From sequence record LC819007.1: a DNA stretch of 64,000 nt, one strand, 5' to 3'. The notes below the pieces were generated by a model. The model was not told the DNA's origin, did no database searches, and saw only the letters and a program-made list of their open reading frames with translations. Position 1 is the stretch's first letter; the number at the start of each line of letters is the position of its first letter. The position numbers and the translations under genes are program-made. Of this stretch, positions 23,398-38,741 are shown one piece after another.

Positions 23398-24051
23398 TTA
23401 GACGGTCAGCTCAGCCGGAATGGTCGGCAGCTCTGCGAGAGTCGTGGCGTTGTCGATCTGTTCCTTCAGTGCCCAGCTCGCGCCGTACACTGCGGACACG
23501 CGCTGGAAGGCCGCGTTCGACATGGCAACCACGCCATTGGCCGAAACCTGCACGACCTTGTTTTCCAGCGTACGGAAAGGCAGCAACGCATCGCCCTGAC
23601 CAGCTGCGATCATGCCATCGGCCGTCACGCGCAGGCCCGTGATGTTGATACAGTCACGGTCACGCAGCTGCACGCCTTGTACGCCATCTTCGCCACCGAA
23701 GTCGTACTGGAAGCCGTTAGCCAGCGTGGTGTCGCGCAGAGTATCGACTTGCGCCGACAGCGTCGGTTTCTGAGCTGCGAGTTGAGCTGCGAGTTCGTCC
23801 GCGGAGAAAGCACGGGCAGTCCATTGCTGGGTCCACACGCCTTCCACTTGAACCGGCGCTGCTTCGGCCACCACGTCGCCCGTCGGTTGAGCGGTCGGAG
23901 CAACCACAGCGTAGCCGAGGTCTTCGATGATCGTTTCATCGGGTTCCGCAGCAAAGCTGGTGTTCGGATTGTCCTGGCGGATCTTGAACAACGACACCGG
24001 ATAGTCCAGTGTGTCGACCTTGATCAGCAAGGTGCTTGCAGTGATGTTCAT
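23398..24051 (-). CDS. Tail fibre assembly chaperone (DUF4376-like, 217 aa)
   Basis: N-terminal YPVS..IRQDNPNTSF motif; C-terminal RD..L..GF...VQLRDRD..NI, W.LKEQI..A. Confidence 0.75.
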   Translation of the reverse strand: MNITASTLLIKVDTLDYPVSLFKIRQDNPNTSFAAEPDETIIEDLGYAVVAPTAQPTGDVVAEAAPVQVEGVWTQQWTARAFSADELAAQLAAQKPTLSAQVDTLRDTTLANGFQYDFGGEDGVQGVQLRDRDCINITGLRVTADGMIAAGQGDALLPFRTLENKVVQVSANGVVAMSNAAFQRVSAVYGASWALKEQIDNATTLAELPTIPAELTV

Positions 24052-24102
24052 CTCTTTATTCCTGATGGGTGCGGGGCGAGCCGAAGCCCGCCCCTAGGTT
24101 AC

Positions 24103-27100
24103 TTAGGCAGTTGCGCCCACCGAGCCCGTCCACTTCGTACCATCCCAGAGCAGGATGACGTTGGTGTACGTTGCGCCCAGCGTCGGAGCCGTACCGCCGC
24201 TCCAGCTGATGGTCGGCCAGGTGATCGCTGCGGCATTACCCGTCACGCACACCACAACCGTCATCGCACGGTTGGCACCCGGTGCGTTAGCAAACGCGAG
24301 AGTCTTGGCCGTAGCCGCGCTCACCGTGAATGCCTGGTTCGCAGCCAGGTCCAGCGTCGCCGTTGCAGCAGCAATCGGCAAGTCGTAACGGTCCAGGCGC
24401 TTCAGACCGATCGTCGTAGTGCCGTTGTTATACGCAACGTAGTACGAGCTGTCGTTCGGCGCCAGCGGTGACGTGAGGCCAGCGAGGTCAACCCAGTTGC
24501 CACCCTTCTGCACGTAAGCCTTGGAATCGTTCGGTGCAGCCACCGCAGTGAGCGTCGACAGATCCGTCCAGTTACCACCCTTTTGAACGTAGGCTTTGGC
24601 GTCATTGGGAGCAATCGCTGCCAGCAACGTCGAAGCATCGGTCCAGTTGCCGCCCTTCTGAACATACGCTTTCGTGTCGTTCGGAGCAGCAACAGCGGTC
24701 AGTGTGGAAAGATCCACCCAGTTACCGCCCTTCTGGGCGTAGGCCTTCGTGTCGTTCGGGGCTTTCGCGGCAGCCAGCGTAGCGAGGTCCGTCCAGTTAC
24801 CGCCGGATTGGACATACGCCTTGGCATCGTTCGGTGCCTGAGCTTGCTGCACCCATGCGCCATCCTTACGGATGTACACACCGTGATCCAGCGGAGCCTC
24901 ACCCACGACCGGTGCCGGCAGCGGCACCCATGCGCCGTTCTCACGAACGTACATGGTGTCGTCGAGGTTGGCGTCGTACACGTTACCGCCACCCAAGAAG
25001 CCGAGCCAGCTCCAGGCCACCGTGGTGGTTTTCTGGAAGAAGCGCAGCGTCGAGCTGTTGAGGAAGTAGTCGCCCACCACCCCGTCAGCCGGGTTCGGAT
25101 CGCGACCGAGCACAATCCAGCGCGTGCCTTGGTCACCACGATCACCCTTCAGACCCTGGATACCCTGTACGCCCTGCAGACCTTGCAAGCCCTGCAGACC
25201 GCGATCACCCTTGGGACCCTGAATCAGACCCACATCGATGAACGCCGTGCCCGTCCACGCCCAACCATGCAGCGTGTCGGAAGCGATGTACATGTCGCCA
25301 GCGTTGGTCGCCGAACCCGGCAGAGCCGAGCTGGTAGCCACCGTACCGAGGATCTTCACGCCCGGGCCCATTGCACCCGTATCGCCTTGGTCGCCCTTGT
25401 CGCCCTTGTCGCCTTTCAGACCTTGAATACCCTGGATACCTTGCAGACCTTGGTCGCCTTGCAAACCTTGCAGACCCTGATCGCCCTGGTCACCCTTCCA
25501 TTGACCTGCGTCAACCCAGACCGTACCGTTCCACGACCAGAGATGACCTGCTACCGTCCAGGCGTCGCCTGCGGTGTTGCCAGTAGCCGGAAGACTGCCA
25601 GTATCGGGCTTGGTGCCGAGGACCTTGACGTTGGCACCAGTATCACCCTTGTCGCCCTTATCCCCCTTCACGCCTTGGATACCTTGAATGCCTTGGAGAC
25701 CGGTGTTACCCGTGTCACCCTTATCACCCTTGTCTCCTTTAACGCCTTGAATACCCTGCAGACCCTGATCGCCCTTCGGACCTTGAATCATGCCGAGGTC
25801 TTCGAACGCAGCACCCGTCCAGCCCCAGAAATGGCCCTGGATCAGGTAACCATCACCAATGGCTTCGGTGGTGTGTGCGGGCAGCTGCGAGGAATCCGCA
25901 AACGTACCGAGAATTTTGATACCCGGGCCAAGGTCACCCTTCACACCTTGAACACCCTGAATACCCTGAATCCCTTGGATACCCTGGTCGCCCTTGTCTC
26001 CCTTATCGCCTTTATCGCCCTTGACACCCTGAATACCTTGGATGCCTTGGTCACCCTTCGGACCGATGAACGGACCGAGATCCTGCCACGCATTGCTGGA
26101 GAACAGGAACAGGTGCGTGCCGGCGATGTACGCGGTTTGATCCGGAGGCGTAGCGGGCAACGAAGCTTGATCTGCCACCGTGCCCGTGATCACGAGACCA
26201 CGACCGGTCGGACCCGTCAGACCCGTGTCGCCCTTTGCGCCCTTGAGCGAAGCGAGCCACTGAGTCTGCGTACCCACGAAGCCGTTGTCGACTGCCGTCT
26301 GGTAAGCCGAATCACCTGCCACACCTTGGAGCGACGCAAGCCATTGTGCTTGCGTACCGACAAAGCCACCAGCCACTGCCGCCGTATAAGCGGAGTCGCC
26401 GTTTGCACCCTTGTCGCCGGTGTCTCCCTTGACACCTTGGACACCCTGCACACCTTGCAAGCCTTGCGGACCTTGCACGGGACCCACGTCGATGAACGCG
26501 GAACCGGTCCATGCCCAGCCGTGGAGCGTATCCAGGGCAATGTACATGTCGCCAGCCGTACCCGAGCTGCCCGGGAGTGCTGCGCTGTTGGCAACGGTGC
26601 CCAGGATTTTCACGCCAGGACCCATCGGGCCGACGTTACCTTGATCACCCTTATCACCCTTCGGACCTTGCGGACCGACGAGCGTGGCCAACCAGGCCGA
26701 TTGCGAACCGACGAAGCCGCTGTCCAGCGCGAGCTGATACGCCGTCTTACCGACCAGCGATTGCAGCCAGGCAGCCTGCGTGCCAACGAAACCATTCGCC
26801 TGAGCGACTTGGTAGGCGGTCTTACCGTTGAGCGACGTGATCCACTGCGAAAGCGTCATCGTGCCCGGGATCAGACCGGCATCCTTCGCGAGCTGGTAGG
26901 CCGACTTACCATCCGGACCCACTTGACCCACCGGCACCCAGCTCGTGCCGTCCCACACCCACATCACTGCATCGATGATGAACGCGTCACCTGCGGTGTT
27001 GCCTTCCGGACCCGGGGGGAGATCACCCACCGTCTGGAACGAACCCAGCACTTTCAGGCCGATACCATCCGAACCGTGAAGCGAATCCATCCAGTCTTGT

Positions 27101-28173
27101 TCCGTGCCGCTGAAGCCCGCGAGCAGCGCGAGTTCATAGGCCGACTTACCTTCGGGCCCTTGCAGGTTACCGAGGTCCGTCCACACACCACCCGACAGTG
27201 CCCAGAATTCCGGTCCGATCAGGTAGCAGTCACCTTCTTGCGATTCGCCAACCGGCGGGAGCGACGCTTGATCGCCCACTGCGCCGAGCAGACGTGCGCC
27301 ATTGCCCATCGGACCTTGCGGGCCTGCAGCACCATCAGCGCCGTCATCGCCCTTCGGACCCTTGAGCGAAGCCAGGTACTCGGCTTGCGTACCCACGAAA
27401 CCGCCAGCGACGGCCAGTTCGTAGGCGGACTTGCCGTCCGTACCATTCGTGCCGTTCGTGCCATCAGCGCCCTTCGCGCCAGTGTCACCCTTGACACCCT
27501 GGTTGCCTTGCAGGCCTTGAATACCTTGAATGCCCTGATCGCCCTTCACGCCTTTCAGCGAGGCAACCCAGGCAGATTCAGAGCCGACAAAGCCACCAGC
27601 GACAGCCGACTCATACGCCGACTTACCAATAGCGCCGTCAGCGCCGTTGGTGCCGTTCGTACCGTCATGACCGTCCGCGCCCTTCAGGCTAGCCAACCAC
27701 TGCGCTTGCGTACCGACAAAGCCGCCCAGTACAGCGAGTTCATAAGCGCTCTTACCCGCTGCGCCATCCGAACCGCTCGTACCGGTATCACCTTTGTCAC
27801 CTTTGTCACCTTTAAGACCTTGGATACCTTGGATACCCTGGTCTCCCTTGGCGCCGACAAGGCTGGCAAGCCACTGGGCTTGCGTGCCGCCATAACCACC
27901 GGCTTGCGCCAGTTCGAAAGCGGATTTGCCATTCGTACCATCGGCACCTTTGGCACCGACCAGCGACGCAAGCCATTGAGCCTGCGTGCCGCTATAGCCG
28001 CCGTCAACGGCGACCTGGTAAGCGGATTTACCCGCCACCATCAACTGCGCCAGGGTGAACTTAACGTTCTTGCCACCCTGGATGGCCTCGACCACTTCCG
28101 CACCAGTGATGGCTGCTGCGTCAGGGAGGTCAGAGATCCGGTAATACAGTGCGGGATCGAGTGTATCACTCAT
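24103..28173 (-). CDS. Collagen-like long tail fibre (1356 aa) with GKSAY repeats and tandem foldon-like repeats
   Basis: Extensive Gly-X-Y tracts, repeated globular spacer modules, APND..AYVQKGG.W repeats. Confidence 0.9.
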   Translation of the reverse strand: MSDTLDPALYYRISDLPDAAAITGAEVVEAIQGGKNVKFTLAQLMVAGKSAYQVAVDGGYSGTQAQWLASLVGAKGADGTNGKSAFELAQAGGYGGTQAQWLASLVGAKGDQGIQGIQGLKGDKGDKGDTGTSGSDGAAGKSAYELAVLGGFVGTQAQWLASLKGADGHDGTNGTNGADGAIGKSAYESAVAGGFVGSESAWVASLKGVKGDQGIQGIQGLQGNQGVKGDTGAKGADGTNGTNGTDGKSAYELAVAGGFVGTQAEYLASLKGPKGDDGADGAAGPQGPMGNGARLLGAVGDQASLPPVGESQEGDCYLIGPEFWALSGGVWTDLGNLQGPEGKSAYELALLAGFSGTEQDWMDSLHGSDGIGLKVLGSFQTVGDLPPGPEGNTAGDAFIIDAVMWVWDGTSWVPVGQVGPDGKSAYQLAKDAGLIPGTMTLSQWITSLNGKTAYQVAQANGFVGTQAAWLQSLVGKTAYQLALDSGFVGSQSAWLATLVGPQGPKGDKGDQGNVGPMGPGVKILGTVANSAALPGSSGTAGDMYIALDTLHGWAWTGSAFIDVGPVQGPQGLQGVQGVQGVKGDTGDKGANGDSAYTAAVAGGFVGTQAQWLASLQGVAGDSAYQTAVDNGFVGTQTQWLASLKGAKGDTGLTGPTGRGLVITGTVADQASLPATPPDQTAYIAGTHLFLFSSNAWQDLGPFIGPKGDQGIQGIQGVKGDKGDKGDKGDQGIQGIQGIQGVQGVKGDLGPGIKILGTFADSSQLPAHTTEAIGDGYLIQGHFWGWTGAAFEDLGMIQGPKGDQGLQGIQGVKGDKGDKGDTGNTGLQGIQGIQGVKGDKGDKGDTGANVKVLGTKPDTGSLPATGNTAGDAWTVAGHLWSWNGTVWVDAGQWKGDQGDQGLQGLQGDQGLQGIQGIQGLKGDKGDKGDQGDTGAMGPGVKILGTVATSSALPGSATNAGDMYIASDTLHGWAWTGTAFIDVGLIQGPKGDRGLQGLQGLQGVQGIQGLKGDRGDQGTRWIVLGRDPNPADGVVGDYFLNSSTLRFFQKTTTVAWSWLGFLGGGNVYDANLDDTMYVRENGAWVPLPAPVVGEAPLDHGVYIRKDGAWVQQAQAPNDAKAYVQSGGNWTDLATLAAAKAPNDTKAYAQKGGNWVDLSTLTAVAAPNDTKAYVQKGGNWTDASTLLAAIAPNDAKAYVQKGGNWTDLSTLTAVAAPNDSKAYVQKGGNWVDLAGLTSPLAPNDSSYYVAYNNGTTTIGLKRLDRYDLPIAAATATLDLAANQAFTVSAATAKTLAFANAPGANRAMTVVVCVTGNAAAITWPTISWSGGTAPTLGATYTNVILLWDGTKWTGSVGATA

Positions 28174-28196: not shown

Positions 28197-28745
28197 TCAG
28201 GAAACCGGCTTTTCGAGCACGCGAATGCGACGCTTTTCATCAGTCGGGATGTTACCGTCGACATTCCGAGCGGACGGCTGCTTGGAGTTTGGTGCGTAGG
28301 GGAAAAAGTAATCCCCCGGCAACCACGCGAGAGACGTGGAAGTAATCGTCAACGTAAGTCCATTGACCGGAATGCTGTCAATAGCGGCATCCACGACTTC
28401 GTCCGCCACGAGATCCAAGCCGAGCCCCGCATTGATCTGCGGCAGGATGGCATGAATGGTCGTGGGGAAGCTCATGGGATCGAAGGGGACCAACTCCCCT
28501 TCCGGTAGTCGGCTGAGCGCATCCATGCTCAACCGCTTGTAGTTCACATCCTTCGGCGGGTCACGACGAGTCGTAGTGTAGGCCGTGGCAGGAACCGTTG
28601 TCGAACCAGCAACTGGATCGGGACCCGCAGACGGGGTCCCGAAGTCGAAGTTGACAGCACTCGGCAACACCGGCGTCTGGGCTTTACGGATCAGTTGTGA
28701 CAGGCGCACCTGGCTCGTGCCCTGATAAGGCTTGATACGAGACAT
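28197..28745 (-). CDS. Conserved jumbo-phage tail/baseplate-associated protein (182 aa)
   Basis: Start MSRIKPY; Y.RL...L..L, ILP.IN..LGL, SLAW motifs. Confidence 0.65.
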   Translation of the reverse strand: MSRIKPYQGTSQVRLSQLIRKAQTPVLPSAVNFDFGTPSAGPDPVAGSTTVPATAYTTTRRDPPKDVNYKRLSMDALSRLPEGELVPFDPMSFPTTIHAILPQINAGLGLDLVADEVVDAAIDSIPVNGLTLTITSTSLAWLPGDYFFPYAPNSKQPSARNVDGNIPTDEKRRIRVLEKPVS

Positions 28746-31601: not shown

Positions 31602-34460
31602 TCACTTGTAGTCGAACGTCAGCACCAGATCGCTACCACCTGTTCCTACAATCTGCAGGGAAATTGCGTAGCCTGGTTGCAACGAATTCGACAACTGGAT
31701 GTAGTCGTTTGAACTACCGGATGAAATCGGCAGCGAGACGGTTTCACTGAAGCCATCGCCGTGACTGATGAAAATATTCAGAATCAGGTCCACCGGACTC
31801 GGCGTACCCAGCTGAATCCGGATACCGGTGAGCATCGAAGCATCGGCAGGCGGATACCAAGGCACTGCAGTCGTCAACGGCGAGATCTTGCCATCGAAGG
31901 CAGCCATTTTCTGGCGAGTCGCTGTCGGGATTTCTACCAGCAACCATTCTCCATTCTTGCGAACGTAGGTGCCGTTATCCTTCGGGGCTTCCAAGACGTC
32001 AATCGGCACCCACTCACCATCGAGTCGAGCCTTGGGAATGCCGTCCGGGTTGGCATCGTAGACGTTACCTCCGCCCAGATACCCCACCCAACTCCACGTC
32101 ACGTTACTGGTCTTTTGAAAGAACCGCAACGTGTCAGAGTTCAGGTAGTAGTCGCCAGGCAATCCGTCGACTGCGTTGGGGTCACGACTCAGCACGATCC
32201 AGCGGTTACCGGTATCGCCTTTGACCCCTTGAATTCCCTGCACCCCCTGGATGCCTTGAATCCCCTGGATACCTTGCGCGCCACGATCACCCTTTGCACC
32301 TTGGATTGGACCCACATCAGTGAAACCCGCACCGGTCCAAGCCCAACCATGCAAGGTGTCCTGAGCAATGTACATATCGCCCAGATTCGTAGCGCTACTC
32401 GGCAAGTCACCACTGGTCATCACCGTGCCAAGAATCTTGACTCCCGGCCCCATCGGACCCGTGTCGCCAGTATCCCCTTTCGCACCTTTGTCCCCAGCGT
32501 TGCCTTGAGGGCCGAGATCCCCCTTGTCTCCTTTATCTCCCTTATCCCCTTTGATACCTTGGGCGCCTTGCAAGCCTTGAATGCCTTGCACACCCTGCGC
32601 GCCCTGCAGACCCTGAATCCCTTTGTCCCCTTTCTCGCCCTGGTCACCTTTCGGACCACGGACGTCACCGGCGTCAACAAAGAACGTGCCGTTCCAGCTC
32701 CAGAGGTGGCCGTTGATCAGATAGCTGTCACCTTTGTTGGCAGCGCTACTGGGCAACTGACTCGGATCAGTGAAGGAACCCAGGACAACAAAGCCAGGAC
32801 CAATGGGGCCTTCGGGACCGATATCACCTTGGTCACCTTTTACCCCTTGTTCGCCCTGATCTCCTTTGTCGCCTTTGTCTCCTTTAACACCCTGAATCCC
32901 TTGCTCACCTTGTTCACCCTGTTCTCCTTGAGGACCACGCACCGGACCAGCATTGGTCCAGCCTGTAGGGGTGTTGATGTAGAGATCCGTACCGATGACG
33001 TAGGCATCGTCGATTGCTGCGTCAGTCGGCAGGGAAGCGGTGTCCGGGACTGTGCCGAGAATCGCAAGACCGCGACCCATAGCACCCTCAGGACCGGCTG
33101 GGCCTGACGGACCAATGTCACCCTTGTCGCCTTTGAGTGAAGCCAGCCACGAGGCCATATCGCCGACGTAGCCTGCGTCTACAGCCAACTGGTAAGCGGA
33201 TTCTCCGTTCTTACCATTCAGTGTTGCCAACCACTGAGTCTGTGTACCAGCAAAGCCTGCGGCAACAGCGAGTTGATAGGCGGAGTCACCCTTCGCTCCC
33301 GTATCACCCTTATCACCTTTGACCCCTGCTGTGCCATCAGCACCAGTGTCACCCTTAGGACCGCGAATGACCCCGAGGTCTTCAAAGGCTTCACCAGTCC
33401 AGCCCCAGAAGTGATCGTCGATCAAGTAACCGTCACCGATCGCATCTGCTGTCTCAGGCAACGCGCTGGAATCATCCAACTTACCCAGGATCTTGATCCC
33501 TGGCCCCAGATCACCCTGATCGCCTTTCTCACCCTTAGGTCCTTGGTCACCCTTGAGTCCAGTGAGTGAAGTCAGCCACTGAGCTTGAGTGCCTTGGAAA
33601 CCATTGGCCACTGCGACATCAAAGGCGCTCTTACCCGAGATCGAGGCCAGCCACGAGAGCTGGTCCCCCGAGAAGCCGTTGGCCTGCGCAACCTGATACG
33701 CTGACTTCCCGTTCAGTGAAGTAATCCACTGGGACAGGGTCATCGACGAGGAAATCAATCCAGCGTCTTTGGCCAACTGGTAAGCCGACTTACCCGGTGC
33801 ACCGACCTGACCCACTGGAGACCACTGGTTGGTGTCCCAGACCCACATGGTCGAGTCGATGATATACGCATCACCCGACTTGTTATCGAAGTTGGGCAGA
33901 TCTCCGATGGCGTGGAACGAACCCAGCACTTTAAGACCAATGCCGTCTGAGCCGCGCAGAGACGCCAGCCAGTCTTCTTCGTTACCCTGAAAGCCTGCTA
34001 CCACCGCCAGCGAGTAGGCACTCTGGCCATCCGGTCCCTGCAGGTTACCCAGGTCTCGCCACTCTCCCGCAATCATCGCGTAGAAGTGGGAGTTGACCAG
34101 ATAACAGTCACCTTCATCAGTCTCGCTCGGATCAGGCAGGTCAGCCACAGCTTGCACCGCACCCAAGAGTCGAGCACCGTTACCCATGGGTCCCTGCGAG
34201 CCAGTGTCGCCCTTGGTGCCCTTCTCACCAGCCGGACCATGCAGACTGGTCAGCCACGCTTCGAGATCTCCCTCGAACCCGTTCTCTACCGCCAAGTCGT
34301 AGGCGTTCTTCCCCAGGACCTTCAGCTGAGCTAAAGTGAACTTGACGTTCTTCCCGTTTTGAATTGCTTCGACGACTTCTGTGCCATCGACGGTTGAGGC
34401 ATCGGGTAGATCGGAGATCCGGTAATACAACTCTGAATTGACAGATGGATCATCGCTCAT
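31602..34460 (-). CDS. Collagen-like tail fibre, paralog of 24103..28173 (952 aa)
   Basis: Same YYRISDLPDA N-domain, GKSAY repeats, Gly-X-Y tracts, EAPKDNGTYVRKNGEW foldon-like motif; start MSDDPS. Confidence 0.9.
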   Translation of the reverse strand: MSDDPSVNSELYYRISDLPDASTVDGTEVVEAIQNGKNVKFTLAQLKVLGKNAYDLAVENGFEGDLEAWLTSLHGPAGEKGTKGDTGSQGPMGNGARLLGAVQAVADLPDPSETDEGDCYLVNSHFYAMIAGEWRDLGNLQGPDGQSAYSLAVVAGFQGNEEDWLASLRGSDGIGLKVLGSFHAIGDLPNFDNKSGDAYIIDSTMWVWDTNQWSPVGQVGAPGKSAYQLAKDAGLISSSMTLSQWITSLNGKSAYQVAQANGFSGDQLSWLASISGKSAFDVAVANGFQGTQAQWLTSLTGLKGDQGPKGEKGDQGDLGPGIKILGKLDDSSALPETADAIGDGYLIDDHFWGWTGEAFEDLGVIRGPKGDTGADGTAGVKGDKGDTGAKGDSAYQLAVAAGFAGTQTQWLATLNGKNGESAYQLAVDAGYVGDMASWLASLKGDKGDIGPSGPAGPEGAMGRGLAILGTVPDTASLPTDAAIDDAYVIGTDLYINTPTGWTNAGPVRGPQGEQGEQGEQGIQGVKGDKGDKGDQGEQGVKGDQGDIGPEGPIGPGFVVLGSFTDPSQLPSSAANKGDSYLINGHLWSWNGTFFVDAGDVRGPKGDQGEKGDKGIQGLQGAQGVQGIQGLQGAQGIKGDKGDKGDKGDLGPQGNAGDKGAKGDTGDTGPMGPGVKILGTVMTSGDLPSSATNLGDMYIAQDTLHGWAWTGAGFTDVGPIQGAKGDRGAQGIQGIQGIQGVQGIQGVKGDTGNRWIVLSRDPNAVDGLPGDYYLNSDTLRFFQKTSNVTWSWVGYLGGGNVYDANPDGIPKARLDGEWVPIDVLEAPKDNGTYVRKNGEWLLVEIPTATRQKMAAFDGKISPLTTAVPWYPPADASMLTGIRIQLGTPSPVDLILNIFISHGDGFSETVSLPISSGSSNDYIQLSNSLQPGYAISLQIVGTGGSDLVLTFDYK

Positions 34461-34594
34461 CTTTCTCACCCTGAAAAATAAATAGAAAAAGGTAGACCCT
34501 ACCTTTTTATCCATAGAATTTGAGTTAAAAAATACAGGGTAAGTGACAGCATAAAGGCCCGGGTTTCCCCGGGCCCGTATGACGCTAGGCTGCT

Positions 34595-35863
34595 TTAGAA
34601 GCCGAGGTCGATGTCCGCGCCGATCACTTCCTTCGACACGTTCTCGGTGGAGACGACGTTGACCAGGTACTGGTTGTTGTCCTGCTCTTGCGGCGACTTC
34701 TGGTTCTCGTTGATGTCGATCCAGTCACGCATGTAGTTCAGCGGGAGTTGGGACGGCATCGTGACACCCAGCTGCGTTTCGACTTCGCGCAGGATGCCGA
34801 ACGAGATACAGACTGCGCGGCCATTGAACAGCGTCCAGTCCTTGAGCTTCGCCACCGTGACACCCGGCAGCTCATCGCCGTCGGAGTGCAGGTAATCCAC
34901 CCAGTTCATTTCACCCGTGAGCACCTCGCACACCGCAGCGATTAGGATCGGACGGATTACTGCGAATGCAGCGCGACCCCACGGTGTCGCCATCAGGTGC
35001 TTGAACACCGCTTCGCCGAACGGCACGTGGTTGGTGTACTCGTCACGGCAGATGGACTGCACCGCTGCACCGATCGGCTCGAACAGGCTCATCTCGCAGA
35101 TCGCGAACGTGACTGCGAACGAGGCCATGAACTGGATACGTTCCAGCATGTACACCGCAGCGATCAGCAACACGACCGCTTGTTCGATCTCCGGCGTACG
35201 GACACCCGTGGTCTGCCATTCCAGAGAAGCGAGCCGCGCACGCTCCATGATCCGGCCAACGGCTGCCATGCGACCGTGTGCTTCACGCACAGCCAGGATT
35301 TCGTTCAGAATCACCGACGGGTCATCGAACGAGCCGCGCACGATTTCCGAGTAGGTCATCGCGTGCAGGTTTTCGTTGTCGATGATACGACCATAGCCGA
35401 CGCGGGACTCCGTTGCCGTACAGAGCGGAATCAATACGTCTGCCAAGCCACGAGCAGCCGTGCTGTCGCCTTCCCACTGCCAGGCGAGGGTACGGATCAT
35501 CATCCGGTAGATCGACGGGCTACAGGTCTTGAATTGCGCCACACACAGCGAGTAGTCGAACTCGTTGTGCTTCCAGTCACTCGCCTTCAGCTCTTCGAAG
35601 AGCGAGAAGAGATCCGGATAGGCCATGTGGATCGTATCGAGCAGGCCGCCCGGCTGGCCCAGGAACAGTTCGGGCTTCTGGTAGTCGTTCTTGTTGACGT
35701 TGAAGATGCGCGTGGAAAGCTGTTCACCGCGCTGCGCTAGCGTCAGGTCGACGTACCCGGCGCGTTCGAGCGCTTCACGGCCCGCATTGGTGATCACGAT
35801 GTTGTTTGCGTTTTCGGACATGTTCTTACTGAGAGATGGGAGGTGAATGAGGTCCTGCTTCAT
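34595..35863 (-). CDS. nrdB: Ribonucleotide reductase class Ia beta subunit
   Basis: Metal ligands and radical Tyr: W.GDS, ENLHAMTY, ERIQFMASF, DEYTNH. Confidence 0.92.
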   Translation of the reverse strand: MKQDLIHLPSLSKNMSENANNIVITNAGREALERAGYVDLTLAQRGEQLSTRIFNVNKNDYQKPELFLGQPGGLLDTIHMAYPDLFSLFEELKASDWKHNEFDYSLCVAQFKTCSPSIYRMMIRTLAWQWEGDSTAARGLADVLIPLCTATESRVGYGRIIDNENLHAMTYSEIVRGSFDDPSVILNEILAVREAHGRMAAVGRIMERARLASLEWQTTGVRTPEIEQAVVLLIAAVYMLERIQFMASFAVTFAICEMSLFEPIGAAVQSICRDEYTNHVPFGEAVFKHLMATPWGRAAFAVIRPILIAAVCEVLTGEMNWVDYLHSDGDELPGVTVAKLKDWTLFNGRAVCISFGILREVETQLGVTMPSQLPLNYMRDWIDINENQKSPQEQDNNQYLVNVVSTENVSKEVIGADIDLGF

Positions 35864-35954: not shown

Positions 35955-38741
35955 TTACAGCTTGCAGGCGCCGCCACCGCACGCGTCTTCCTGTTCGGAT
36001 TCAACGTACTCCACATCCGGCATGGAGAACAGCTTGATCCATGCTTCTGTGTTCCAGACGTGCCAGCTGTTGCCGATCAGATAGCTGTCGCCGAACTGGT
36101 CACCCGTACTGGGCAAGTCACCGACACGCGCTACCGTACCGCGGAACTTCACGAGACAGTCCGTACCGAAGAGTTCACGTGCGACTGCGAACTTCTCTTC
36201 CGCTTCCGCGTAAGCTGACGGCTGCTTCACTTCAAACGACACGGCGTCTCCCGACGCTGCTTTGCTGATTGCCAGTGCAGCAATTTCTTCTGCACCCGGC
36301 GCGTAACCCGGAATGCCGCCACTGCTCAGATCCAGCGGTGGTTGCTTGGCACTGAAGTCGTGATCAGCCGGAAGCAGTGCCTTCACGACCTTGCTTTCTG
36401 CCGCCACTGCCGCGATCACGTGTTCCGCATCATTCGCCGCTGCTGCTTCCGTGGCTTTCGCCGCTTCTGCCGCACCCGGGATCTTGTCCACCAACGAAAC
36501 TGCCGCCGCCGTATCCTTGACCTTCGGACGCAGCGTGTTGGTGTAGTAGCGGCTCTTCATACCCCGCATGATCATGTACAGGAAATTCCGAACCACTTCT
36601 TCTTCCGAGACCTTCGTCTCACCCGACTTGAACTTGCGATACAGATCCGCCGAGATGCCCTGGTCCGTCCACTTCTGCATCACTGCATAGCAGTCGATCA
36701 GGTCTTCGGTTGCGATGTCCCACGCCGATTGATACGCGTCGCCGAGGATATCGCCGTCCACCGCCGCCCAGCGAATCATGTTGTTGTCGCCATCGCCCTT
36801 GGTGATCACCACCGAACGGATCGGGTAGACCGAGTTGGTCGAGCCCAACGCCTTCGAGGACGATTCGCCCGGCATCATGGACGACAGCACGCTGTGACCG
36901 AGCCCGCCGTTGTCGATCAGTTGCTGCTTCACAGCAGCCCAGTCGTACACGTTCTCGAACGATGCGATCTTGTCGACGTTCTTGTTGTACGTGTCGAGCG
37001 GCGTCCAGCCTTCCGGCCACTTCGTCTTGTGCATCCACGGCGCAACACCACGCTCCTTCGAGATCTTGATCGAAGCCTGGATCAGGAAGTACATGTGACG
37101 TTCGAACACACGGTGAATTTCCTGCTTGCCTTCCACCGTATCCCAGCGCAGACCCTTGCGAGCCATGTGCGTGGCCAGACCCATGATACCGACGCCGGCG
37201 TTCATCCGTTGCTTGGCCGTATAGGCCAGGTGCGGGAACGGGTACTTGCCGTTCAGAACCGTGAAGTCGATCATCTTCAGCGCGTAGTAGCAGGCGTCGA
37301 AGTAGTCGGCGTCATCCGTGATGTTCTCGATCGGGATCGCGGCCAGGTTACACATGGCAATTTCGCCACGGCCGTGATCTTCGTAGCTGTACAGATCGCG
37401 CATGTCGTAGTACGGGGCCTGGATCTCGAAGATTTCCTGGCACAGGTTCGACGAATGGATGCGATGCGTCGGCGTGATCTTGAACGGCGTATGGCGGTTC
37501 GCTTCGTGGATGTTCGTCAGGTACGCCGTACCCGTGTCGAACGCTTCCGCGAACGAGTGCAGCACCAGCTTGCGCGCCGAGATGTACTTCTTCGGGAACA
37601 GCGGATCGTTCTCGTACTTGTTGTACAGTTCGACGAAGCCCTTGATGTCGTCCGAGAAGAACTTGTCGAAGAGATCCGGCGCCGAGAACTTCGTGAACGT
37701 GAAGATGTCTTCCGACTTCTGCACCTTCGCCGCGAACCACGGATTCACCAGCATCGAGAAGTGCAGTTCGCGCAACTGCTTGTCCGCCGGTTGCAGCGGA
37801 TTGCGGTATTGCACGATGTCCACAGCTTCCGGATCGAATGCGGAGAAGCTCGTCGTTCCAGCACCAGCACGGGCAGCTTGCTTGTTCGCGATGGTCGCTT
37901 CAGCATTGGCCTTGTAGTAGCGGTACTTGCCCGCGTGCTTGACGCGGCCCTTGGCAACCGGGTCGCCGACGGTACGCGTGTTGATGAACGAACCGAGACC
38001 AGCCGAGTTCACGGTCATTTTGTACGCAATGTGGTCGCCAATCGCGAGCGACTCCGCGTCGTCGTCCGACGTGAAGATGCAGCACGAGGCGTAACCGTTG
38101 TGCGTCGAGCCCAGGTACAGGTAGTTCGGCGTCGGTGCCGAGAGCTTCTTGCCCGAGAGCTTTTCGTAGAACTTGCGCACGTGCATCATGCGCTGAGCCT
38201 TCGGCTCTTTCTCGGCGAGTTGCATCGCCATACGCATGTACAGGTGCTGCGGCGTTTCGAAGATCTCGCCGGTGGCGTGATTGCGAATCGCGTACTTGTC
38301 ACGGATCTGCTTCAGCGCAAATTCCGGATAGAAGAAATCCCGGGTATGGTCGATGATCGATTCGATCTTCGCGTATTCTTCACGCGAGTAGTTCAGTTTG
38401 CACATCAGGCCCAGTTCTTCGCTGGCCAAGCGCGTGTGTTGTTCGTAGACGGTCGGCGGGGTGATGCTACCGTAGACGTCCTTGCGGTACACGGTCGCAA
38501 ACAGGCGTCCGGCCATCAAATACGCAGGCCACGTCCGGATTGCGAGCAACTCTTCGATCAGCGCGAGCATCAGTTCACGCGTGGAGGCCTTCTCGGGTAG
38601 CTTCGCGACAGCGGCCAGCGCCGCTTGAGACCAGTCCACACGGTTCGAAAGGTGATTGGCGGCCCATTCGCCCCAGCCATTCAGCTTGCCTGGGATCATA
38701 GGCTCTTCAGAGCCATTTCGCTTGATAAGAGTCTGCAACAT
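35955..38741 (-). CDS. nrdA: Ribonucleotide reductase class Ia alpha subunit with extended C-terminal tail
   Basis: ASCC, SSNLCQEI, MPGESSS, KSRYY motifs; C-terminal CGGGACKL cysteine pair. Confidence 0.95.
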   Translation of the reverse strand: MLQTLIKRNGSEEPMIPGKLNGWGEWAANHLSNRVDWSQAALAAVAKLPEKASTRELMLALIEELLAIRTWPAYLMAGRLFATVYRKDVYGSITPPTVYEQHTRLASEELGLMCKLNYSREEYAKIESIIDHTRDFFYPEFALKQIRDKYAIRNHATGEIFETPQHLYMRMAMQLAEKEPKAQRMMHVRKFYEKLSGKKLSAPTPNYLYLGSTHNGYASCCIFTSDDDAESLAIGDHIAYKMTVNSAGLGSFINTRTVGDPVAKGRVKHAGKYRYYKANAEATIANKQAARAGAGTTSFSAFDPEAVDIVQYRNPLQPADKQLRELHFSMLVNPWFAAKVQKSEDIFTFTKFSAPDLFDKFFSDDIKGFVELYNKYENDPLFPKKYISARKLVLHSFAEAFDTGTAYLTNIHEANRHTPFKITPTHRIHSSNLCQEIFEIQAPYYDMRDLYSYEDHGRGEIAMCNLAAIPIENITDDADYFDACYYALKMIDFTVLNGKYPFPHLAYTAKQRMNAGVGIMGLATHMARKGLRWDTVEGKQEIHRVFERHMYFLIQASIKISKERGVAPWMHKTKWPEGWTPLDTYNKNVDKIASFENVYDWAAVKQQLIDNGGLGHSVLSSMMPGESSSKALGSTNSVYPIRSVVITKGDGDNNMIRWAAVDGDILGDAYQSAWDIATEDLIDCYAVMQKWTDQGISADLYRKFKSGETKVSEEEVVRNFLYMIMRGMKSRYYTNTLRPKVKDTAAAVSLVDKIPGAAEAAKATEAAAANDAEHVIAAVAAESKVVKALLPADHDFSAKQPPLDLSSGGIPGYAPGAEEIAALAISKAASGDAVSFEVKQPSAYAEAEEKFAVARELFGTDCLVKFRGTVARVGDLPSTGDQFGDSYLIGNSWHVWNTEAWIKLFSMPDVEYVESEQEDACGGGACKL

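Follow-up and report, generated by a model that had tools for sequence, protein, structure and literature searches.

The C-terminal tail of NrdA, the alpha subunit of a class Ia ribonucleotide reductase (RNR), is the subject of this analysis. The gene lies in a stretch of 64,000 nucleotides (the window) of sequence record LC819007.1, the 291,257-bp genome of Ralstonia phage FLC4-3B. Subtracting 124,000 from a record coordinate gives the window coordinate. FLC4-3B is a jumbo myophage of Ralstonia pseudosolanacearum, as is FLC1-1B, its near twin; RP12 is the closest described relative of both (PMC11530567). RP12 and RP31 are related to phiKZ (PMC5468394), and a tree of the import protein PicA places RP12 among the nucleus-forming chimalliviruses (bioRxiv 10.1101/2024.03.21.585822). 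The NrdA tail is not mentioned in the published descriptions of the FLC phages or of RP12 and RP31 (PMC11530567, PMC5468394), or in bioRxiv 10.1101/2024.03.21.585822. The gene and the parts of its product, in order of the protein chain, are as follows.

35955-38741, minus strand: nrdA, class Ia RNR alpha subunit, 928 amino acids (aa) plus stop codon, 100% identical to LC819007.1; annotated in GenBank as gp162, from 38699
36543-38741, minus strand: catalytic body, aa 1-733, with the conserved Tyr-Tyr pair at its end, supported by alignment with E. coli R1
36468-36542, minus strand: proximal tail, aa 734-758, which aligns with phiKZ-type NrdA (phiKZ, PS119XW), whose tail is of the ordinary short kind
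36216-36467, minus strand: Ala-rich linker, aa 759-842, the first part of the insert, recognized by its Ala content and varying in length by lineage
36165-36215, minus strand: conserved amphipathic helix before the module, aa ~843-859, a helix in both AlphaFold2 (AF2) models
36024-36158, minus strand: four-stranded beta-module, predicted to be folded, aa 862-906, identified by a hidden Markov model (HMM) of fibre modules only, hhalign, AF2 and Foldseek
35982-36023, minus strand: acidic peptide, aa 907-920, nearly invariant, predicted to be disordered and not found in phiKZ-type tails
35958-35981, minus strand: C-terminal redox pair C-x4-C (Cys921, Cys926) and the last two residues; the Cys columns are invariant and common to phiKZ-type NrdA

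The catalytic body has the features expected of its family. NrdA matches the Pfam families Ribonuc_red_lgC (PF02867, E 1.3e-79, aa 218-733) and Ribonuc_red_lgN (PF00317, E 1.1e-16), as well as PHROG 84 (E 1e-221). E. coli R1 structures align with aa 5-737 in phmmer (E 4e-104). The active-site Cys, the Asn-x-Cys-x-Glu motif, the second Cys and the Tyr-Tyr pair are all kept in this alignment. We take these columns to be C225, N437, C439, E441, C462, Y730 and Y731 in the E. coli numbering. At the N-terminus, the alignment with E. coli R1 begins at residue 7, and a Pfam match to the ATP-cone is absent at E<=1. In FLC4-3B and FLC1-1B the GenBank start of nrdA is an internal Met located 14 codons past the first ATG at 38741 (window 38699-38741, minus strand). 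The 14 additional residues are kept in RP12, where the long form is annotated, and have counterparts at the N-terminus of E. coli R1. Translation therefore probably begins at 38741.

A preliminary description of this DNA, made from its letters, had reported an extension of ~190 aa at the C-terminus of NrdA. We found 195 residues after the Tyr-Tyr pair, ending in C-x4-C, and no Pfam match anywhere in aa 734-928. An insert of ~165 residues is located between the proximal tail and the terminal cysteine pair. It is composed of the Ala-rich linker of variable length, the conserved helix, the beta-module of 43-45 aa and the almost invariant acidic peptide, in this order. The linker had already been called Ala-rich, and Ala indeed makes up 29% of aa 740-835, compared with 9.9% in the NrdA core. 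Whole NrdA proteins measure 928, 901 and 886 aa in different lineages. The module lies where the preliminary description had put it: ~36030-36160 was given, and aa 862-904 occupy 36030-36158. The normal cysteine end described after it is also present, at aa 921-926. The module occurs as a single copy, is flanked by the helix and the acidic peptide, and G-X-Y runs are found nowhere in NrdA.

E. coli-type NrdA (4r1r, 2r1r) has the same catalytic columns, Tyr-Tyr pair and C-x4-C spacing and an adjacent nrdB, but not the ~165 extra residues with the folded beta-module before the cysteine pair. In phiKZ-type NrdA, the nrdA-nrdB order and the C-x4-C are also the same. Only about 30 residues separate the Tyr-Tyr and cysteine pairs there, and linker, helix, module and acidic peptide are missing.

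The preliminary description had aligned part of the tail with spacer modules of tail fibres. The window encodes two collagen-like fibres with such modules. These genes and nrdB are listed below.

34595-35863, minus strand: nrdB, RNR beta subunit, between nrdA and fibre gene 1; Pfam Ribonuc_red_sm (PF00268), E 6e-18; annotated in GenBank as gp161, 34595-35821
31602-34460, minus strand: collagen-like tail fibre gene 1 (gp160); Pfam Collagen E 3e-28, PHROG tail-fibre families, annotation
34041-34181, 33804-33941, 33366-33503, 32940-33074, 32661-32798 and 32304-32447, minus strand: six gp160 spacer modules, 41-70 bits with the module HMM
24103-28173, minus strand: collagen-like tail fibre gene 2 (gp155), from translation and annotation
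27163-27303, 26920-27063, 26476-26619, 26068-26202, 25786-25926, 25498-25635 and 25222-25365, minus strand: seven gp155 spacer modules, 22-70 bits with the module HMM

In both fibres, the spacer module joins directly to collagen triple helices on either side. The fibre module quoted in the preliminary description exists, but it belongs to gp155 (aa ~850-890, 25498-25635) and is ~7.8 kb away. The distance of about 1.5 kb given there for the fibre gene holds for the start of gp160, which is separated from the nrdA stop only by nrdB.

Profile comparisons revealed a clear relationship between the NrdA module and the fibre modules. An HMM was built from nine fibre modules only, with NrdA left out, and searched against the 850 stop-to-stop open reading frames (ORFs) in six frames of the window. 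It matched the NrdA tail with 32.9 bits and an independent E-value of 2.3e-9; the next ORF had E = 2. The two fibres contained 13 significant domains, and the NrdA tail was the only other match. On the whole 291-kb genome, the same HMM matched the two fibres and NrdA and no other gene. The profile-profile alignment proposed in the preliminary description gave a significant result: hhalign aligned NrdA tails with the 13 fibre modules over 41 columns, with a probability of 96.1% and E 3.5e-9. PHROG tail-fibre families also match the NrdA tail (phrog_15437, E 2.2e-5).

The relationship extends far beyond this genome. A phmmer search with the last 95 aa of NrdA against 1.84 billion representative proteins gave 126 matches at E<=1e-3. 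Most of these are long proteins matched repeatedly at query positions ~30-75, which correspond to the module, and 106 of the 126 contain collagen-type G-X-Y runs. Pfam families found in the 41 shorter matches are Collagen (27), Mtd_N (3) and Fibritin_C (2), with Collar, Phage_fiber_2, Phage_fiber_rpt and Phage_tail_C in others. The module itself has no Pfam or NCBIfam model, as checked on the tail, the fibres and the foreign carriers, and the family is contained in PHROG families 15437, 3904, 27485 and 13666. DUF2793 (PF10983) has no Pfam match in the NrdA tail or in fibre 1, and appeared below threshold in one foreign module protein (E 0.042). Based on the HMM, hhalign, PHROG and phmmer matches, the NrdA module is a member of a very widespread phage-fibre domain family.

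Structure prediction indicated that the module is a folded unit. In the AF2 model of aa 814-928, made with an alignment of NrdA tails and modules, it forms four strands with a predicted local distance difference test (pLDDT) score of ~94, and the preceding helix scores ~70-77. In the model of aa 715-928, it is the sole well-predicted unit (pLDDT 80-87). The Ala-rich region was predicted as low-confidence helices and disorder (43-74), and the last 22 residues, with the acidic peptide and the cysteine pair, score below 50; linker and last 22 residues together span 35-74. A Foldseek search of BFVD, a collection of predicted viral structures, with the module gave 10 matches at E<=1e-3 (best 7.6e-5), to phage tail-fibre, collagen-like, head-fibre and adsorption proteins. 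Several superpose at 1.2-2.9 Å over ~50 residues, and RP12's own fibre is found lower (E 2e-3). This comparison is of prediction with prediction, as the module family has no experimental structure.

Searches of experimental structures were less informative. Foldseek found none in the PDB at E<=1e-3, the top one being the putative tailspike of phage GVE2 (7chu, E 0.17). A PDB search with a sequence profile (alignment A1) returned only 8rk3, below threshold at E 0.02, and a search with a larger alignment (A3) was dominated by collagen chains and uninformative. The 8rk3 match is to the receptor-binding protein gp54 of phage JBD30 (8rk3/8rk4), in its DUF2793 or N-terminal 'thigh' region, and covers Leu-Pro ... 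Gly-Asp-x-Tyr. Foldseek aligned the NrdA tail with gp54 over 75 columns at 24% identity (rank 23); gp54 has a helix-plus-sheet arrangement in a trimer. The thigh is a central three-helix bundle with peripheral sheets around it, and it anchors the trimer to the baseplate (PMC11445458). The likeness is below significance in both searches, and we regard it as only a lead.

The NrdA and fibre modules are both ~43 aa long and share invariant Gly, Leu-Pro, Gly-Asp and aromatic positions and a predicted four-strand fold. They differ in context. Fibre modules occur as 6-14 repeats on G-X-Y helices, whereas NrdA, a cytoplasmic enzyme, has a single copy. The NrdA module thus has the sequence and predicted fold of the family but not its trimeric-fibre setting. 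By profile and by modeled fold, the NrdA tail carries a true homologue of the tail-fibre spacer module, in agreement with the original alignment.

We then examined the distribution of the insert. A word-indexed search with the tail alone found two full-length carriers only: P0001, a metagenomic protein of 901 aa, and RP31 NrdA. With an exhaustive search, more distant relatives were recovered as well, in the form of two C-terminal NrdA fragments, P0006 and P0013; both have helix, module, acidic peptide and C-x4-C, and nrdB follows each of them. P0006 was considered as a split gene, and this was rejected: a run of N is located inside the gene on MTEW01003993.1 and the upstream part of nrdA is present ahead of it, so the fragment is an artefact of scaffolding. 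The gene for P0001 is found on two contigs, a 93-kb one from JGI and one from Logan, both syntenic with FLC4-3B, and a 283-kb IMG/VR genome encodes an identical tail. RP12 and all metagenomic contigs have the same gene order around nrdB. Among 50,697 phage records, the tail is found in FLC4-3B, FLC1-1B, RP12 and RP31 only. Scans of IMG/VR and JGI metagenome contigs found no lineage beyond those from the protein searches.

The survey of related jumbo phages called for in the preliminary description thus found the insert in FLC1-1B, RP12/RP31, the P0001 lineage and two metagenomic fragments. It is carried by five lineages, whose modules are only ~50-70% identical, and this rules out an assembly chimera. 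The nearest NrdAs outside this clade belong to phiKZ-type Pseudomonas phages. They are 54-56% identical, the alignment ends at aa 735-750, and their genes end about 30 residues past the Tyr-Tyr pair with the same C-x4-C. Five carriers next to short phiKZ-type tails show that the tail was lengthened by an insertion in the ancestor shared by this small clade, which centres on Ralstonia phages. Judged from these sequences, the insert is vertically inherited and was acquired before the five lineages split.

The module is not a recent copy from the neighbouring fibres. Its best non-NrdA partners are foreign modules, at 40.0, 35.9 and 35.6 bits. Of the 678 module matches, the highest from the fibres of FLC4-3B itself is number 107, with 19.9 bits. 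The tail has no significant blastn match in the rest of the window, including either fibre gene (best E 0.077). Because the own modules rank low and nucleotide similarity is missing, the acquisition is old, and a recent duplication from the neighbouring fibre is rejected. The preliminary description had spoken of a copy of the fibre module and of a structural module captured into an enzyme. A homologue of the module is indeed found inside the redox tail, but it is not a copy of the nearby fibre.

Conservation is graded along the protein. Compared with RP12, the core is 82% identical (ratio of nonsynonymous to synonymous substitution rates, dN/dS, 0.14), the alignable part of the linker 51% and the module 60%, with dS saturated in the module. 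The last 21 codons are 95% identical, with a dN/dS of 0.03. Across the five lineages, 14 of 43 columns in the module are invariant, as are three hydrophobic or small positions in the helix and 15 of the last 18 columns.

We are confident that this NrdA is an otherwise ordinary class Ia alpha subunit whose flexible redox tail has gained a vertically inherited insert of ~165 residues with a module of the fibre family. In class I RNR, the tail cysteines swing into the active site, re-reduce it, and swing out again for their own reduction by thioredoxin or glutaredoxin. We tentatively propose, by inference and with somewhat less than even confidence, that the insert makes a swinging-domain redox tail in which the module serves as a docking handle. 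The swinging arm of class I RNR would be turned into a swinging domain. The long tether would let the cysteines reach further, whether in cis, across the dimer or from one dimer to another. Together, the module and the acidic peptide, which lie 15-20 residues from the cysteines, would provide the arm with a specific surface for docking, and this surface might bind the reductant, the active-site entrance, or both. The module itself is not proposed to act in catalysis.

Several observations support the docking proposal. The insertion point is inside the tail, between the proximal segment shared with phiKZ and the cysteine pair. Catalytic residues, Tyr-Tyr pair and C-x4-C have all been retained. 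Within the tail, only the module is predicted with confidence to be folded, and the insert has been kept in all five lineages despite the divergence of their modules. The gradient from a variable linker through the module to a near-invariant end is what a functional handle would predict.

Other observations weigh against it. No partner has been found for the module. Pfam searches of the genes beside nrdAB, the annotation of the genome and a crude scan for C-x-x-C revealed neither thioredoxin nor glutaredoxin; together these make a weak search. All other modules found are located in obligately trimeric fibres, a context that favours self-association over partner docking. Single-chain AF2 output is uninformative on docking, and the predicted fold is not independent of the homology call because the AF2 alignment was seeded with fibre modules. 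Furthermore, FLC4-3B and FLC1-1B, whose genomes are 99.0% identical, have no amino-acid change in the 735-codon NrdA core, and five of their six amino-acid differences are located in the 47-codon module (36018-36158, minus strand). Such clustering is very unlikely under a uniform expectation (~2e-6, a rough estimate). With a dN/dS of 0.44, the module is either under weaker constraint than the core or subject to partner-driven change, and the differences fit relaxed constraint as well as partner co-evolution. The dN/dS values of the module (0.44 and 0.2) do not support positive selection. The one annotated candidate from the scan for C-x-x-C, gp208 (LC819007.1 196321-196680, outside the window), was considered as a redoxin and rejected; it has two C-x-x-C pairs with weak zinc-ribbon matches and is not of the thioredoxin fold.

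Chance resemblance, or an artefact of assembly or annotation, has a negligible probability as an explanation. Short aromatic and Gly-rich motifs can recur randomly, and the likeness was first noticed by eye. However, the E-values come from four independent methods (fibre-only HMM, PHROG, phmmer and hhalign), predicted structures match fibre proteins, an unbroken ORF reaches the canonical cysteine pair, and the same architecture is found in independent isolates and metagenomes from different samples. Together these refute this reading. The main rival concerns function and is unlikely in our estimate: helix and module may keep their fibre habit and bring three tails together. Since alpha is a dimer, trimerized tails would link RNR into clusters or lattices, which would concentrate dNTP (deoxynucleoside triphosphate) synthesis, for example near the phage nucleus of a phiKZ-related phage. 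Every other carrier of the module found is a trimeric fibre-type protein, as the G-X-Y runs in most phmmer matches illustrate. In fibres, the module is attached directly to a triple helix at either end, the NrdA module follows a conserved amphipathic helix, and the likeness to the JBD30 gp54 trimer (profile E 0.02, Foldseek rank 23) points in the same direction. On the other hand, the collagen segments, which NrdA does not have, may alone drive trimerization of the fibres, and the PDB likenesses are below significance. We consider it quite improbable that the module is an assembly element which trimerizes RNR tails or latches them into a higher-order body or onto the phage nucleus shell. If it were true, dNTP synthesis would be organized beside the replication compartment, and a structural domain would have been reused for a metabolic 'factory'.

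The module could also be a passenger or spacer, a mini-domain inserted by illegitimate recombination into a tolerant disordered tail without specific binding. It would persist because it is harmless, and at most it would lengthen or stiffen the arm. No other part of the enzyme tolerates insertions as well as the tail does, the module acts as a spacer in fibres, and the clade that carries the insert is small. The module also evolves faster than the core, in the comparison with RP12 as in that with FLC1-1B. Against this, the insert has been kept with the fold-determining residues of the family in five lineages at saturated synonymous divergence. The acidic peptide that arrived with it is the most conserved stretch of the whole tail, and several invariant positions are specific to NrdA and go beyond the family signature. 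We judge this explanation to be unlikely. Tethering to virions, which the preliminary description had suggested alongside oligomerization or partner binding, is highly improbable. NrdA would co-assemble with fibres or ride in the particle, which might account for the confinement of the module to the two fibres and NrdA in this genome and for the position of nrdAB directly upstream of the fibre genes, on the same strand, in all relatives. However, many foreign modules are closer to the NrdA module than those in the fibres of the phage itself, and an enzyme of 100 kDa would have to be grafted into a collagen trimer, for which we know of no precedent. In addition, the 32 proteins of the RP31 virion proteome include the module-bearing fibre ORF150 and not NrdA (ORF153), which disfavours tethering (PMC5468394 Table S3). 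This proteome was obtained by band excision and is of limited depth (PMC5468394).

Additional features were observed in the fibre genes. The longest ORF of gp160 starts at 34514, and the GenBank start at 34460 (minus strand) agrees with the N-termini of fibre 2 and the RP12 fibre. Translation therefore probably omits the 18 codons at the beginning of the long ORF. Both fibres contain a second repeat unit of ~30 aa between collagen segments, and fibre 2 ends with five or six tandem repeats of ~25 aa (about aa 1100-1240); neither is covered by Pfam. A DUF7941 gene (28197-28745, minus strand) is located directly upstream of fibre gene 2. In RP12 and the P0001 contigs, a homologue of this small gene is found between nrdB and the single fibre gene. 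This placement suggests that the DUF7941 gene and the fibre form a conserved accessory pair, and that FLC4-3B gained a second fibre gene next to nrdB. The G+C content is 0.60-0.62 over fibre gene 2 (window 24000-28000), compared with 0.52-0.57 elsewhere, and the GC skew is negative. The Gly/Pro-rich collagen codons are the likely cause of the high G+C.

The C-termini of class I RNRs are described as short disordered tails with two cysteines, and folded domains have been reported only in the C-termini of class II enzymes (PMC9669993). RNR C-termini were called poorly understood in the same family-wide survey (PMC9669993). Class II RNRs provide a precedent for a folded domain in a cysteine-bearing C-terminal extension of alpha (PMC9669993). 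Their domains belong to a different class of enzyme and differ in fold and in presumed chemistry (metal or cluster binding), and they have no sequence or fold relation to the module. The lipoyl domains in the E2 component of 2-oxo-acid dehydrogenases are small beta-domains on Ala/Pro-rich linkers. They resemble the NrdA arm in having an Ala-rich tether, a small beta-domain and a redox group that visits several sites. This is an analogy only, and no homology is claimed. The redox group of E2 is a cofactor carried by the domain, whereas that of NrdA is a pair of cysteines at a disordered terminus.

The practical weight of the finding is limited, as the clade is small, with five lineages in all public data searched, and the function is inferred only. 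The case highlights a very widespread fibre module with neither a Pfam or NCBIfam model nor a solved structure. In a class Ia enzyme, a conserved domain that is predicted to be folded lies at a distance of 15-20 residues from the redox cysteines. Since the module family is otherwise confined to virion fibres, this is a clear case of a domain from a structural gene moved into a core metabolic enzyme. If the module does dock the reductant or join tails, the enzyme would be a natural and testable variant of how the tail finds its two destinations.

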